64,000 nucleotides of DNA, taken from contig JBLDXI010000024.1 in the NCBI GenBank assembly GCA_047495785.1, positions 2,542,001 through 2,606,000 on the forward strand, written 5' to 3'. The notes below the pieces were generated by a model. The model did not search any database, was not told where the DNA came from, and worked only from the letters and a program-made list of their open reading frames with translations. The position numbers were made by a program, and so were the translations under genes. Position 1 is the first letter of the stretch; each line of letters starts with the position of its first letter. Positions 1-57,439 of this stretch are shown here, piece by piece. Source of the stretch: Lepidodermella squamata (lineage: Eukaryota > Animalia > Gastrotricha).

Positions 1-3000
1 ACGTTAATGCAAAGAACAGATTCGACGCAATCTTTCAACATGACATACCTATCCTATAAAACTGGCTTTGGCCTCCTGACTGGCAACCACTGGCTTGGCA
101 ACGATTTCATCTCGCTGATTACCAACAACTACAACCCTTATTACATCATGTTTTACATGACAGCTGTCGATGAAACCGTTGGTTTTGCGATCTACTCAGG
201 CTTTTCAATCGACAGTGATGAAACTGGAAATTTCACGTTGAGATTAGGGCCATACGTCAAAGGAAACGCTGGAGATGCTATGAGCTATTCGAACCTTCAA
301 AAATTCTCCACCTACGACAAGCAGTTTGACGGAGCAAACTGCGCGTCTCTTTCTGGAGCTGCTTGGTGGTTCAAAGGGCCAGACTGCGCAAAAGCTGCTT
401 TTACAGGGTAACAAACCTTCAAAAAATATGTTTAATTCTCGTACGATTTCTTGTAGCACTTACGGGTTGAGGCTATACGGTAAAGGACCGTTTTGGAGCA
501 CATGGCGATCTGATACCTTGAAGACGATCCGAATTCTGATTAGACGAAACTTACCTGAAGTTTTCTCCCCTAGTAAGAAAGATTCATTTTGACTGTATTC
601 TATCAAATGTTTGCTCCATCTTATTCTCTCCAGCTACTCCTCATCCAAAACCAACTGACTGCAAGGACATACGTAACCACAAACCTTACGCTCTGAGTGG
701 GATCTACACGATTTTCCCTACGGAAAACTCAAGCGCCCCTTTACAGGTCTATTGTGAAATGGCAGCTCATGGTGGCGGTTGGACTGTCATTCAGCGCCAA
801 GACTGTAACAATCCTGTGCTTACAAATAAAACCTGGGCGGAATACGAAGCTGGCTTTGGCTTGTTGGATGGATCGCATTATCTTGGCAACAGTCAGATCA
901 ATCTAATGACGACAAATTCACGACCAAATGCCGCCTATGAGTTGATGGTAGTTCTTCAAGACGTCAAGCTGCTTCAACAGTCGTTTCACTATAGCACGTT
1001 TGAGCTTAAAGGCAGCACTTACCAACTCAGCATAGGGACTTTCAATCCGTTATCTTACAATACGACTACAGCCGATGCCTTGGCAACCTCGAACAACCAG
1101 CCTTTCTCAACCCCGGATGTCCCTAATAGTATCTCATGTGCTGCGACAAAAACAGAGGGCTGGTGGTTTTCATCGACCTGCAGTGCCACAAATCTCAATC
1201 CTCGTTGCAGCAGTAGTAGTCCAACATCCTATCCGATCATCTGGAATGGATGGGGTGCGAATGCAATTGTGTTGGCGACTATGATGATTCGTCCAAAAAC
1301 GGCGAAACCGAGGGATTGCCAAGATTTGTACCAAGCTGGGTCAACCACTAGTGGTCTCTACGTCATATATCCGACTGGTGCCGGAGCGATCAAAGTTTAC
1401 TGTGATATGTCGAACAACCTCGGCACTGGTGAGATAGGATGGACGGTGAGAAATTCATGTTTTGAATAGGATAATTTAGGAATTTTCTATAATTTCTAGG
1501 TTATTCAAAATCGGCAGGCAATAAACGTTGAATTCCGGCGGAACTGGGCAACATACAGGGCAGGATTCGGGCTGACGGCAAATAACAGCGATCACTGGCT
1601 TGGGAATGAAAATATACACCTCATGACATACAATGCCACTTACTCGCTACTCGTAACACTCACAACTACAGGCGGTTCGACCATTAGAGCTTACTACAAC
1701 AACTTCAAAATCGGCCCAGAGTCTGACAAATACAGACTGATAATATCAGGCTACCAAAGTAATAGATCATCTGCATCAGACTATCTAGACGATTACCACA
1801 ACAATAGAATGTTCTCCACGTATGACTATGGTCCAGCGAGTGGCTATTACGGCGACATCATAACGTCTCGCTCAGGCGGCTGGTGGCATGAATCAGCAAT
1901 GAACTCGAATTTAAACAACATGGCCAACGCAACGTCGTATTACGAAGCTTTTATTGCGTGGGGTAGCAGGATGGCTAAAACTCGAATGGCCATTCGCAGA
2001 TCTGGAATTTTCACAGCTGGGTATGCTAGCACCGAAACGGTAGCTCCAGGTTACTTTATGTCGACTTGCAAGCGCTTTTACTACCAAACCGGCGGAGAGA
2101 ATATCAAAGTTCAATATCAAAATCCCAATTTTCCAGGATGGTACGTGGGCGATGACTTATTGTGTACTGGTAGGATTATTTGTAATTCACTTACAAGCAA
2201 TAGCCTAATTAAAAAAATTCGACATAGAATACGGCTCTTCATCGGATTGCAGTTATATCCAATACAGTTACAATTACCAATTTGCTGCACGGAAAACTTC
2301 AGCGACTCAATTGATGAGTCAATACACTTACGGCACGTTCACGGGCTTTTGTGATCAGCAAACGTTCGGCGGCGGCTGGATCCTGATACTGCGAAGAGTA
2401 GACAATTCAACCACTTTTCCATCAACCGCAGCTTCATACGAAAGCACCATCGGTGATCCACTTGGCAACTATTGGTTGGGCTTGAAATACATTCGATGGA
2501 TGACTGCAAGTAATAACTACGACCTGATGGTTGAGTACGGTGGAAGTGATTGGTCGGCATTCGCTGTGTACACAGGATTTACCGTTTCAACCACGGATAA
2601 CGTCCTTCGTATCGCATCTTTCAAAAACACATCATCCGCGCTTATCGACGGTCTGTCTCCTCTCAACGGGACAACATTTGGCACGGATCTATGTGGCAGC
2701 GGGCCTTGGTGGTACCGTGACGTTAGCTGTGGCAATACATCATCGAATCTTAACAATCCTTTTGGTTTTCAAGCAAATGCCTCAAAAAACATCTTCTGGG
2801 GCAGTATTGGAACCCAGCCTGGTTCAGTGATTACGCATGTTGAAATGAAAATGCGCCCATCAGTTATCTCTTTGATGTTTGGTGGCTACTTAAAAGCGCC
2901 GAATTTCCTGTGCAGTGTTGCGCCCTCATTTACGTACAGCTCGATAACTAGCGAATTGATTTGCCACATGAAATGTCAACAATACAGCTCATTCAATTGC

Positions 3001-55000: not shown

Positions 55001-57439
55001 TAAGAAAAAACCGTTCAAGTTTCCATTTTGGACGATTGGAATTGCTTGGTTCCGTAAGTTGCGCCAGCTTTTACTTATTTTTGAAGGAACTTTTTTTGCC
55101 TTCAAGTGGTCGCTGTATCAGTGGGAACCTCTGCGTTCTTAGTTATTATGTTCAGCCTGCAATGGGGTCGAGAAAAGTCACTGCAGTGGTTGTCAAGCAT
55201 GGGAATGCACATAATTCAGGATGTCATTGTTGTTCAATCGGTCAAAGTCTTGCTAGTCTCAGTGTTCACGTCATCCTTATTGAAGCTGCCGGACGACGGA
55301 GTGTCTCTTGGGAAACTGGTTTACTCTCGCTGTAAGACATAGTTTGCCAGTTGAATTATTGACATTTAGATTTTTTTTCGAAATTTAGGCAATAATTCGG
55401 AAAGGACATTGGTTTTTAAACGCACTAGGAACATCATAGCTGGGATAGCCCATCACATTGCCTACGTAATCGCATTTGCTCTGGTGATTGCTACAACCCA
55501 AAACACCTACCGTTACCAAATCGTCAGAGATATCCGTCCCTTGGTTGATTTTGATGGCATTCAACAGGTGATAGATCCGATTATTGATTACGGACGTATC
55601 TTCGATTGGCTCAACAATAAAGTTATTCCGAATTTCCTGAATGGCAACCAGATCAACTACGGCGGGGTTTTCAATGAGAAAAACCTTTACGTCGTGCCGA
55701 ATCATGATGTGACAATTATCGGTCCGATAAGACTAAGGCAACAGCGCGTTTCGAGATCACCGTGTCCTATCGCAATAACTTCGACAAAATCTTACGTAGG
55801 CCGATACAGGGAGAAACTTGCCCCAGACCAGGCTCCATGCCAAGAATCATACTCAAGCGATACAGGAATAGGACTTTCATCCGAGACTCGAGATTTCAAC
55901 AAAAGCTGGTCCATTTTAATGACGAGCTATATTGATAAGTCCAATATTTCGATCGAGGACGCACCTTGGTTTTACAGAGACGATAGCTCCGGATTTCCAT
56001 ACTCTGGCTGGTCGGCGATTTACAAGTCTGGTGGCTACTATGTCGACTTACCCAACAGGATGTGGAAAGCTCAACGGCTTGTTTCGCAGCTGAAAGATGA
56101 AAGATGGCTTGATAACTCGACTTCAGTGCTCTTCGTTGACTTTACGCTGTACAACTCTCAAATCAACCTGTTCCTCTCAGTCAAAATTGTCTTCGAGGCA
56201 CTATCAGCTGGTGGCATGAATTACCACGCGAGGCTCTACCCGTTACAGCTATATCAATACTCCGGCGCTAGCAGTATCCTGATTTTTGTGATCCAAGGCA
56301 TTTGGATACTTTTGTTGATTTCTGAAACTGCGAAAGTTGCTTATTTGATGCGGAAAAATGGACCTCAGCAACATTTGAAGGACGGCTGGAACTTGTTAGA
56401 AGTCGTATCCATTCTCATGGGTTACGGGATTATCGGGCTTTTTGCTGCTCGAATTTCGAGCATTATTAAGGTCGTAACGAAGATGCAGACGACCCGGAGT
56501 TCTTACACCAATCTTGACCTATTGGTTTACTGGGACGAAGTAATGGCGAATCTCTATGGTTTGACGTTTTTCATGACAATGATGCTGTTTTTCCGAAATC
56601 TGAAGTTCAACAAATACTGGTGTATGTTCCTGGCGACCCTCTCAAAGGGCAAAAGTGACCTTTTATCCTTCATTGTCGTTTTCACGATGATCACAATGAT
56701 GTTCTCTGGCCTCGGCTATCTGACCCTCGGAGCTACCCAGAGTGAGTTCAGGTCAATGACGGCTTCGATAATGAGTCTTCTGCAAAACGTTATTGGAGTT
56801 ACTGGGAATTTGATAGCCCTCGGCTCTCAATCTCGCTTCATCATGATCTACTGCATTGCCTATTCATCGATCGTCATGTTCTTAGCTGTTCAGATTTTCA
56901 TGACGATTATTACAGTGACTTATGACCGAATTTCTGACGATATCGAGGGGAACACTGACTGGGATAAAGAAGTCGATGAATACATGTCTGAGGAATGGAG
57001 AAAGCTGATTGCAAGAAAACAACCGAAAATGTCGGAGGAAATTGATCAGCTCCTTTTGAAAGATGAAAGCTGTTACAGTAAACGTAAGTCGTTTTTCTTT
57101 TTTTCATAACAATTTATGATTAAAATAATTTATCCAGTTGAAAGCTCTTTGAACCGGTTGTCGAAGCATGTTGACGTGGTGGCGAGTAATGCTCCGCTGA
57201 TCTCGGAAGACAAACGCGTGACCTGCAACATTCGCTGGGCGGAACAGTTTATCAAAGTCACGCAAAATGACCGAGCGCAATCTACTGGTTCACAAGGCGA
57301 AGCTCGACGGATAAGAAAGCTGCCATCTGTCGAGCCTTTGTACCCAGTGAAGCTCGCGCCTGCCGGGGCTTATTACGATTTCGTCAAGCGATTTAGCGAA
57401 CACGACATTTTCAAAACGGCTGATTTCAAAGCAGATTGA
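46079..57439 (+). CDS. Polycystin-1-like receptor-channel, copy 4 (divergent paralog): SP - EGF x4 - F5/8C - FReD x4 - PAN - CCP x3 - EGF x4 - Ser/Thr stalk - degenerate GAIN - 11 TM/PLAT/channel
   Basis: ATG at 46079 (MIRAFLPIAILAVQLLPKITFC). Exons splice in frame through ORFs 47083-47433, 47390-48055, 48263-49447, 50176-51633, 52199-52621, 52821-55142, 55106-55342, 55409-57109 and 57116-57439. Canonical FReD1 (FSTKDRDND..NCA..GAWWY.SC..SLNG) and the same polycystin motifs as copies 1-3. Confidence 0.85.
52140..52435 (+). repeat. Thr/Ser-rich mucin-like low-complexity stalk, unique to copy 4
   Basis: TTPVVTTTVTTATPSATATTTSATITSTQ...SATSTKPSAVTTT. Confidence 0.85.

Follow-up and report, generated by a model that had tools for sequence, protein, structure and literature searches.

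Can lectin domains and a polycystin channel module be parts of one and the same protein, and if so, what might such a protein do? The question is raised by a stretch of 64,000 nucleotides from the gastrotrich Lepidodermella squamata (G000:C24:2542001-2606000; hereafter the window), which belongs to a 121-Mb assembly of 151 contigs, has a GC content of 40-48% and lacks long compositional breaks. COX1 is absent from the assembly, and its HSP70 has matches of 73-83% scattered among bivalves, barnacles, tardigrades and amphibians, in keeping with an animal source. The stop-to-stop open reading frames (ORFs) on its forward strand form one pattern that is repeated four times, and self-BLASTN gives a repeat period of ~15-16 kb; the repeats correspond to four tandem paralogues that we refer to as c1 to c4 (Table 1). 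Copies c1 to c3 share 76-88% DNA identity, and c4 resembles them only in the channel exon (~66%). The c1 gene is cut by the start of the window and is complete in the genome, with its first exons ~0.8 kb upstream, where a tblastn search with the c3 N-terminus matches the c1 5' end (G000:C24:2541199-2542000, 60% identity). As judged from sequence, each copy is very probably a single large gene in which a lectin ectodomain is fused to a polycystin-1-type module with eleven transmembrane (TM) segments.

Gene models were built as splice graphs scored by codon log-odds and by donor and acceptor matrices trained over successive rounds, and codons split by an intron were checked for stops. A strict intron penalty yields 15-19 exons per copy and a lax one 23-28, and two retained introns were recognised by eye; a low penalty adds doubtful tiny terminal exons, and the models are approximate outside the long exons. 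All four copies splice in phase and stop-free into proteins of ~3,050-3,390 amino acids (aa), with introns mostly of 47-70 nucleotides (nt) in these ab initio models. The c3 model has 16 exons, whose outer ends are the ATG and the stop; AG/GT is kept at all 15 internal junctions when these are projected onto c2, and at most of them in c1. The preliminary description of this locus had reported four in-phase genes with one stop in copy 2. The phase holds in all four, and the stop is intronic: the c2-specific stop (21407-21409) lies inside a 68-nt GT..AG intron (21357-21424) that is common to c3. As the sole c2-specific stop found is intronic, c2 looks intact.

The junction between the lectin and TM halves is borne by a large exon. 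In c3 this exon starts in phase 1 at the boundary of a complete six-cysteine EGF repeat and continues unbroken through a GAIN-like domain, TM1, PLAT and TM2-4, and the large exons of c1-c3 all hold EGF, GAIN-like domain, TM1 and PLAT in one exon. The exons that precede it are phase-1 EGF exons of 102-108 nt, and the exon encoding the fourth fibrinogen-related domain (FReD4), PAN and CCPs ends in the same phase in c1-c3. An extracellular EGF repeat fused to TM1 needs a signal peptide upstream, and the TM half therefore cannot start alone; no methionine with a signal peptide, conserved among the copies, was seen where this half begins. Spread over three exons in c1-c3, the TM half aligns collinearly with a single unbroken ORF (1,632 aa) of a metagenome relative. 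In this relative a 59-nt GT..AG intron, placed identically ahead of the GAIN-like domain, connects the ORF to an upstream exon (CCP, EGF, LamG-like, mucin linker, CCP). The earlier proposal of tandem genes running from an ectodomain through an 11-TM channel is thus borne out by Pfam domains, conserved splice sites and the collinear ORF of this relative.

From the N-terminus, and with c3 as reference, the modules follow in the order signal peptide, discoidin-like module, EGF-like piece, FReD1-4, PAN, three CCPs, EGF stalk and GAIN-like domain. Pfam was run on single ORFs, and the spliced proteins were scanned with locally built profiles. A domain scan of the spliced proteins had been suggested as a check; on the single ORFs, Pfam returned Fibrinogen_C four times in each copy (E as low as 4e-40), along with F5_F8_type_C, a weak PAN_1 (E 0.0017), Sushi, several EGF families and PKD_channel, a set of matches that chance cannot explain. 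PLAT had no match. A profile made from 60 unrelated FReDs identifies exactly four near full-length FReDs in each spliced copy; c3 FReD1 covers profile positions 26-223 of 233 after splicing, and FReD1 is complete only with a 116-nt mini-exon (c2 17132-17247, c1 457-572; c3 in Table 1). In the intron after this mini-exon there is a ~950-nt insertion in c3 (32198-33154) and c2 (17254-18248), possibly a transposon, that c1 (580-642) lacks. Copy c4 has a clear putative signal peptide, c2 and c3 a weak one. F5_F8_type_C is matched by Pfam in c4 only; the discoidin module of c2 and c3 is predicted through its BLASTP homology to the c4 module, and phmmer found no match between the c2 and c3 N-termini and F5/8C-rich proteins.

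The number of EGF repeats is ~16, 7-9, 8 and 2-4 in c1 to c4 respectively, with a Ser/Thr-rich mucin-like exon largely replacing the stalk in c4. The stalk varies by whole 102-nt phase-1 exons, and since its length varies, the distance from head to membrane differs among the paralogues. Among solved structures FReD2 is closest to FIBCD1 (E 2.3e-26), with tenascin-R and TL5A also among the best matches, and FReD3 is without the P-domain cysteine pair, and its disulfide, by sequence. PKD and REJ repeats had been found not recognisable in these genes, and neither has a Pfam match in the window ORFs even with E as high as 1; the GAIN-like fold is predicted to occupy the whole 470-residue stretch from the last EGF repeat to TM1.

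This juxtamembrane domain of ~470 residues was modelled by AlphaFold2 from a ten-sequence alignment, with a predicted local distance difference test score (pLDDT) of 75 and a predicted template-modelling score (pTM) of 0.71, as a helical subdomain followed by a beta sandwich. Foldseek matches the model best to GAIN domains, namely those of BAI3, BAI2, CD97 and latrophilin (E 1e-6 to 3e-4, probability 1.0, template-modelling scores only 0.2-0.4), and we regard the domain as putatively GAIN-like. The autoproteolysis motif of GPS is HL/T with flanking cysteines and tryptophans. At the GPS position the array proteins have a basic cluster (RRRKR, RRKKR, RRRKR and RKRR in c1-c4) located in a low-confidence acidic loop and followed by a nearly invariant stalk and last strands, and the cluster is kept in relatives of only 21-39% identity. 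The GPS motif thus appears to have been lost, with a predicted furin-type basic site in its place.

A hydropathy scan finds eleven hydrophobic segments: TM1, TM2-4, TM5-6 and five more in the channel exon. The region from TM1 through PLAT to TM3 aligns with human polycystin-1 (PC1; 6a70_B residues 71-337, phmmer E 3.4e-11), and PLAT is predicted from this match together with PLAT/GPS clusters from an ESM feature search. Pfam matches to Polycystin_dom (E to 4e-32) and PKD_channel (E ~1e-23) are present at the 3' end of every copy, and the pore module is related to PKD2L1 and PKD2 (E 1e-39 to 1e-35), PKD1L3 (E 8.8e-23) and PC1 (E 6e-13). The TM half matches polycystins only, with no secretin-like 7-TM domain. 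The filter LGD of PKD2 and PKD2L1 is replaced by IGV in all four copies, and as the clade of FReD-bearing genes to which they belong lacks the PKD2-type LGD filter, the proteins are probably auxiliary PKD1-type subunits. The C-terminal tail (~120 residues), where members of the PKD1/REJ family have a coiled coil that binds PKD2, is poorly conserved, with 24% identity between c3 and c4.

By their predicted topology, PLAT, GAIN fold, TOP domain and pore, the array genes are members of the PKD1 family, and their departures from it are the ectodomain set, the lost GPS motif and the family size. They share with PKD1, PKD1L1-3, PKDREJ and SpREJ1-10 the 11-TM arrangement with a TM1-PLAT-TM2-5 part and a TM6-TOP-pore block, a GAIN domain before TM1, a large modular ectodomain (often with lectin modules) and the absence of the PKD2 filter aspartate. 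Most PKD1-family members have REJ and PKD repeats. The array genes, in contrast, lack PKD repeats, REJ, LRR, WSC and C-type lectin domains, and have four FReDs, a discoidin-like module, PAN, CCPs, an EGF stalk and a basic site for GPS. C-type lectin domains are present in PC1, PKD1L2 and SpREJ1-3, and a SUEL lectin in SpREJ3 and PKD1L2 (PMC1934368; PMC2120838); PKD1L3 is counted in the PKD1/REJ family despite having no REJ (PMC1934368). PKD2/TRPP subunits differ from the array proteins in having six rather than eleven TM segments and an LGD rather than IGV filter. The FReD fold is that of FIBCD1, ficolins, tachylectin-5A and mollusc FREPs, but the array FReDs are neither secreted nor oligomerised via collagen, coiled-coil stalks or Ig domains, and stand in tandem on a channel subunit. 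Adhesion G-protein-coupled receptors (GPCRs) have a similar membrane-adjacent GAIN fold and modular adhesive ectodomain, whereas the array proteins have an 11-TM polycystin body instead of a 7-TM one and no GPS cleavage motif.

The preliminary description knew of no polycystin with tandem FReDs, and full-text literature searches turned up no paper on a FReD-bearing polycystin. The search for Fibrinogen_C combined with a channel, also suggested there, gave a single FReD carrier among the 150 best representatives of public PKD1-like proteins, a 'PKD1L3' prediction of Branchiostoma lanceolatum (P0110 = CAH1271112.1; P0160 is a close paralogue), so that the architecture has a precedent in amphioxus. 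Alone among the other proteins found, these automatic predictions have F5/8C, Fibrinogen_C, EGF, PLAT and PKD_channel as the array genes do, but with a single FReD, a C-type lectin domain, and GPS and PLAT domains that Pfam recognises. Because the TM module is only ~27% identical to that of the window genes (rank 110), the amphioxus FReD was probably fused independently; amphioxus PKD1-like proteins mix MAM, CUB, fn3, pentraxin, kringle, Sushi and F5/8C freely. The closest TM halves found (38-43% identity) are those of metagenome relatives (P0001/P0153, from L001/L066, and P0155, from L067), which have the same GAIN-like domain, basic site and stalk motif. They differ in having CCP, EGF and LamG/pentraxin-like domains and a mucin linker beside the GAIN domain, and no FReD was found within the 1.4-3 kb of upstream DNA before the contigs end.

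The window genes are part of a larger family. Six-frame searches of the 121-Mb assembly give no fewer than 55 PKD_channel loci and no fewer than 150 FReD matches; 29 of the former are preceded, 4-16 kb upstream, by FReDs in the same orientation. On C24, five of these are around the window, ~22 at 4.17-4.64 Mb and one at 1.86 Mb, and C9 and C46 have one each. In a maximum-likelihood tree of 50 channel modules, all 28 FReD-linked modules that it includes and two unlabelled ones form one group (support 83/92), containing subfamily A (16 rows including c1-c3; 98/95) and subfamily B (10 rows including c4; 100/99), so that the window places members of different subfamilies side by side. With at least 28 FReD-linked channel modules in one tree group, the lineage-specific family proposed earlier is supported, as an expanded one; this compares with 5 family members in man and 10 in sea urchin (PMC1934368). 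A census of filters finds LGDFDF only at L005 and L006 (G000:C7:32696-33370 and C1:4597891-4598565), whereas all PKD1-like loci lack the filter aspartate and the FReD clade reads I/V-G-V-T/S-G; L005 and L006 are candidate pore-forming partners for the ~50 PKD1-like subunits. There are also many FReD arrays with no polycystin channel within 16 kb (C24:3.05-3.45 Mb, and on C56, C11, C12, C21 and C29), several of which have three to five FReDs in single ORFs of ~790 aa; possibly these encode secreted proteins with multiple FReDs, akin to the heads of the family.

The interpretation that we favour, and consider probable as a whole, is that the array encodes lectin-headed polycystin-1-type subunits, each a very large type-I-start protein with 11 TM segments, whose heads act on a channel. 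Each of PC1, PKD1L3 and suREJ3 associates with a PKD2-type subunit; in the solved complexes (6a70, 7d7e) the ratio is 1:3. By analogy, each array protein would supply the one non-canonical chain of a heterotetramer, the other three being PKD2-type subunits. A glycan or a protein would be the ligand of its lectin-like head, and binding would modulate cation entry by way of the stalk, the GAIN domain and the TOP domain/pore, the head acting either while tethered or after cleavage at the furin-type site; paralogues would differ in head specificity and stalk length. The N-terminal ectodomain of PC1 is reported to activate PC1/PC2 in a manner that needs its CTL and the TOP domains (PMC7728438). For the mechanism itself, that is, modulation of a channel heteromer by ligand binding at the head, we see roughly even chances. 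Its fullest form, in which the at least 28 members constitute a lectin-gated polycystin repertoire with fixed specificities and furin-processed GAIN-like domains, and ligand binding would directly gate a heteromer with one of the two LGD-type PKD2 subunits, is a tentative proposal that we think unlikely. As to the setting, sensory cilia or contact chemosensation ranks first, followed by non-self or immune recognition and then by gamete recognition.

Several observations weigh against the reading of the array as lectin-headed polycystin subunits. Pfam GPS and PLAT are both unmatched in the window ORFs. FReD2 keeps the acetyl pocket of FIBCD1 (Tyr, His and Tyr) only in part, with Phe for one Tyr, Asn for His and the other Tyr unchanged, and its calcium site is degenerate, retaining only the first Asp in the alignment to FIBCD1. 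The exons for the signal peptide in c2 and c3, and a number of small ones, come from the ab initio model only and shift with the intron penalty. Independent contigs of the public run X1 tile the array where compared, on 34700-40650 (5,951 letters), and cover the introns too, which identifies X1 as a DNA run; it is the sole public run that matches this locus, and the exon joins are predicted from genomic sequence.

Whether the heads diversify as those of an immune repertoire might can be addressed through their substitution patterns. Among c1, c2 and c3, omega (the ratio of nonsynonymous to synonymous substitution rates) is 0.01-0.11 for TM2-5, pore and TOP, 0.08-0.15 for the GAIN-like domain, 0.11-0.36 for FReDs, PAN, CCPs and EGFs, 0.45 for the discoidin-like module and ~0.8 for a 65-residue linker. 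The 11 paralogue pairs that can be scored for the FReD4-PAN-CCP exon have omega values of 0.06-0.27 (a twelfth, L062/L058, is saturated), and there is no sign of positive selection, none of the 25-codon windows of this exon exceeding 0.4 in the scored pairs. Protein identity within subfamily A is 81-98% in the channel and 39-88% in the FReD4-PAN-CCP exon, and in one pair the channel modules are 98% identical and the exon 59%. Synonymous divergence (dS) between paralogues is 0.3-1.7. All parts are thus under purifying selection, and the copies are old, individually maintained genes; the heads are under 4-8-fold weaker constraint than the channel, and an arms-race signature is undetected at this resolution. 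Concerted evolution was considered as the cause of the channel conservation and rejected, since dS in the channel (0.5-1.7) is as high as in the ectodomain. We note two conversion-like tracts, in TM2-5 of c1 and c3 (dS 0.02; 9113-10105 versus 40135-41127) and in the pore of c1 and c2 (dS 0.05; 10678-11337 versus 26604-27263); the adjoining segments of the same pairs have dS of 0.3-0.5.

These values bear directly on the alternative that survives best, an innate-immune or allorecognition repertoire in which the FReD heads would serve as diversified pattern recognition signalling through the channel. FReDs are recognition modules of ficolins, FREPs, tachylectin-5A and FIBCD1, and the best solved relatives of FReD2 fall in this company (FIBCD1 and TL5A, with tenascin-R); the family is large, tandem and lineage-specific, its heads are far more divergent than its channels (as the 59% versus 98% pair illustrates), and the genome is rich in FReD arrays without a channel. 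Nonetheless, constraint in the 11 pairs is of the kind just described, the paralogues are old, with dS of at least 0.3-0.5, and each is conserved in its own right, which fixed specificities fit better than an arms race, and the polycystin module is in no known immune receptor. Diversified pattern recognition as first proposed for this locus, if taken as an arms race, is not borne out, the heads being under purifying selection (domain omega 0.06-0.45, no 25-codon window above 0.4), and the immune alternative as a whole strikes us as unlikely.

More doubtful still is a role in gamete recognition of the suREJ/PKDREJ type, in which sperm-surface lectin-polycystins would bind egg-coat glycans and trigger ion fluxes. 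The sea-urchin REJ proteins with lectin modules are the closest characterised functional analogues, and SpREJ3 pairs with SpPKD2 (PMC1934368, PMC2120838), but the REJ domain is absent from the array proteins, and omega is well below 1 here, whereas positive selection has been reported on REJ lectin domains (cited in PMC1934368). At least 28 maintained paralogues are also far above the known need of any gamete system. A sensory or recognition repertoire would account for so many individually conserved paralogues better than gamete recognition would.

Each unit could instead comprise two co-duplicated genes, a secreted FReD/CCP/EGF lectin beside a separate PKD1-like channel gene. The two halves are joined here on genomic sequence, gene callers split the contigs of the relatives at the intron before the GAIN exon, and FReD arrays without a nearby channel do exist in the genome. 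Against such a division, a complete six-cysteine EGF repeat shares its phase-1 exon with GAIN, TM1 and PLAT in c1-c3, the TM half shows no conserved methionine and signal peptide at its start, the splice sites are conserved across copies, and 28 loci, among them the dispersed ones on C9 and C46, have the halves in this order and orientation. We consider two genes per unit improbable. That the array consists of pseudogenes, as tandem arrays often do in part and as the stop first reported in copy 2 might have suggested, or is an assembly artefact, is scarcely credible given stop-free models in all four copies with the c2 stop intronic, omega far below 1 everywhere at dS up to 0.5-1, DNA differences of 12-34% that fit neither collapsed nor duplicated assembly copies, and the independent tiling by run X1 contigs.

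The coordinates of the array features are collected in Table 1. Upstream of the window a fifth PKD1-like gene with FReDs (G000:C24:2527000-2540700; L051, L052) ends ~1 kb before c1; its channel module forms a long branch in the tree, with GVS at the filter. A small ankyrin-repeat gene lies between c3 and c4 (43567-44558, reverse strand; two ORFs, Pfam Ank_2 E ~1e-22), and on the relatives' contigs L001 and L066 an ankyrin-repeat gene is directly downstream of the PKD1-like gene, a linkage that is either conserved or coincidental. Class C GPCR genes flank the array, at 58694-61123 (forward strand; ANF_receptor E 2e-13) and at 62124-63983 (reverse strand; 7tm_3 E 7e-13), and the ANF_receptor-bearing ORF of the former has a single weak relative among 5.8 billion proteins.

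Table 1. Positions, in window coordinates, of the four tandem genes and their parts.
Feature	Position	Strand	Basis
c1, 5' end outside window (signal peptide, discoidin-like module and FReD1 start upstream)	1..11982	+	ab initio, 19-25 exons, no stops
c1 FReD1 (partial) to FReD4, PAN, three CCPs	1..3724	+	Pfam Fibrinogen_C, Sushi; four FReD matches in spliced model
c1 EGF stalk, mostly 96-108-nt exons, ~16 repeats, longest of the four copies	3776..6820	+	models, repeat count
c1 large exon: EGF, putative GAIN-like domain, RRRKR 8291-8305, TM1 8492-8548, predicted PLAT ~8630-9007, TM2-4	6870..9461	+	
c1 TM5, TM6, TOP, pore (two exons); IGV in QNIIGVTG 11194-11217	9515..11485	+	Pfam
c2 complete gene, at least 17 exons	15686..27912	+	models
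c2 first exon, homologue of c3 30657-30720	15686-15749	+	splice-site projection
c2 EGF stalk	21425-22764	+	
c2 large exon: EGF, putative GAIN-like domain, RRKKR 24234-24248, TM1 24435-24491, predicted PLAT, TM2-4	22813..25404	+	
c2 TM5-6, TOP, pore module	25455..27411	+	
c3 complete gene, reference model	30657..42994	+	models
c3 putative first exon, weakly hydrophobic signal peptide	30657..30720	+	ab initio only; homologous c2 exon
c3 discoidin-like (F5/8C-like) module and Cys-rich EGF-like piece	30838..31416	+	homology to c4, BLASTP E 3e-16; no Pfam match
c3 FReD1, including 116-nt mini-exon 32075-32190 (C-terminal strands)	31470..32190	+	Pfam E 1.5e-34
c3 FReD2 and FReD3, two exons	33146..34710	+	Pfam E 1.6e-36, 7.8e-27
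c3 FReD4, PAN/apple, three CCPs (Sushi), one exon	34772..36267	+	Pfam; donor after last CCP cysteine
c3 EGF stalk, ~7 exons, mostly 102 nt, phase 1-1	36340..37842	+	
c3 large exon: EGF, putative GAIN-like domain ~38035-39441, RRRKR 39313-39327, conserved stalk 39412-39441, TM1 39514-39570	37892..40483	+	
c3 large exon, continued: predicted PLAT ~39652-40029, TM2-4	37892..40483	+	match to PC1 6a70_B
c3 TM5, TM6, start of TOP (polycystin) domain	40537..41127	+	Pfam Polycystin_dom
c3 remainder of TOP and S2-S6 pore; IGV in QNIIGVTG 42202-42225	41180..42493	+	Pfam; PKD2L1 E 1.7e-39, PKD1L3 E 8.8e-23
c3 last exon: cytoplasmic tail, stop codon	42780..42994	+	
c4 complete gene, subfamily B	46079..57439	+	models, tree
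c4 signal-peptide exon, one EGF exon, F5_F8_type_C	46079..47262	+	Pfam E 1.5e-6
c4 four FReDs, PAN, CCPs, first EGF	47492..51616	+	Pfam; four FReD matches after splicing
c4 EGF stalk region	51825-52611	+	
c4 Ser/Thr-rich mucin-like exon, in place of most of the c1-c3 EGF stalk	52140..52611	+	translation; no Pfam family
c4 putative GAIN-like domain, RKRR 53898-53909, TM1 54087-54143, predicted PLAT, TM2-11, TOP, pore, tail	52781..57439	+	Pfam
c4 filter IGV in QNVIGVTG	56783-56806	+	

How polycystin complexes are activated is a long-standing question, and the lectin part of the PC1 ectodomain has itself been proposed as an agonist (PMC7728438). The recognisable lectin heads (FReD and discoidin) of the L. 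squamata array, set on nearly invariant channels, make the coupling of ligand to channel experimentally approachable, and the genes show how far the PKD1 family can be remodelled, with no PKD or REJ repeats, a predicted furin-type site for GPS and a neutral filter. Were expression to be found in sensory, immune or germ cells, the genes would constitute a new receptor repertoire for that tissue; otherwise they would be a well-documented instance of domain shuffling and gene-family expansion. Should the lectin-gated repertoire prove true, it would represent TRPP-based chemosensory or non-self recognition, and natural polycystin ligands might be identifiable from the head.

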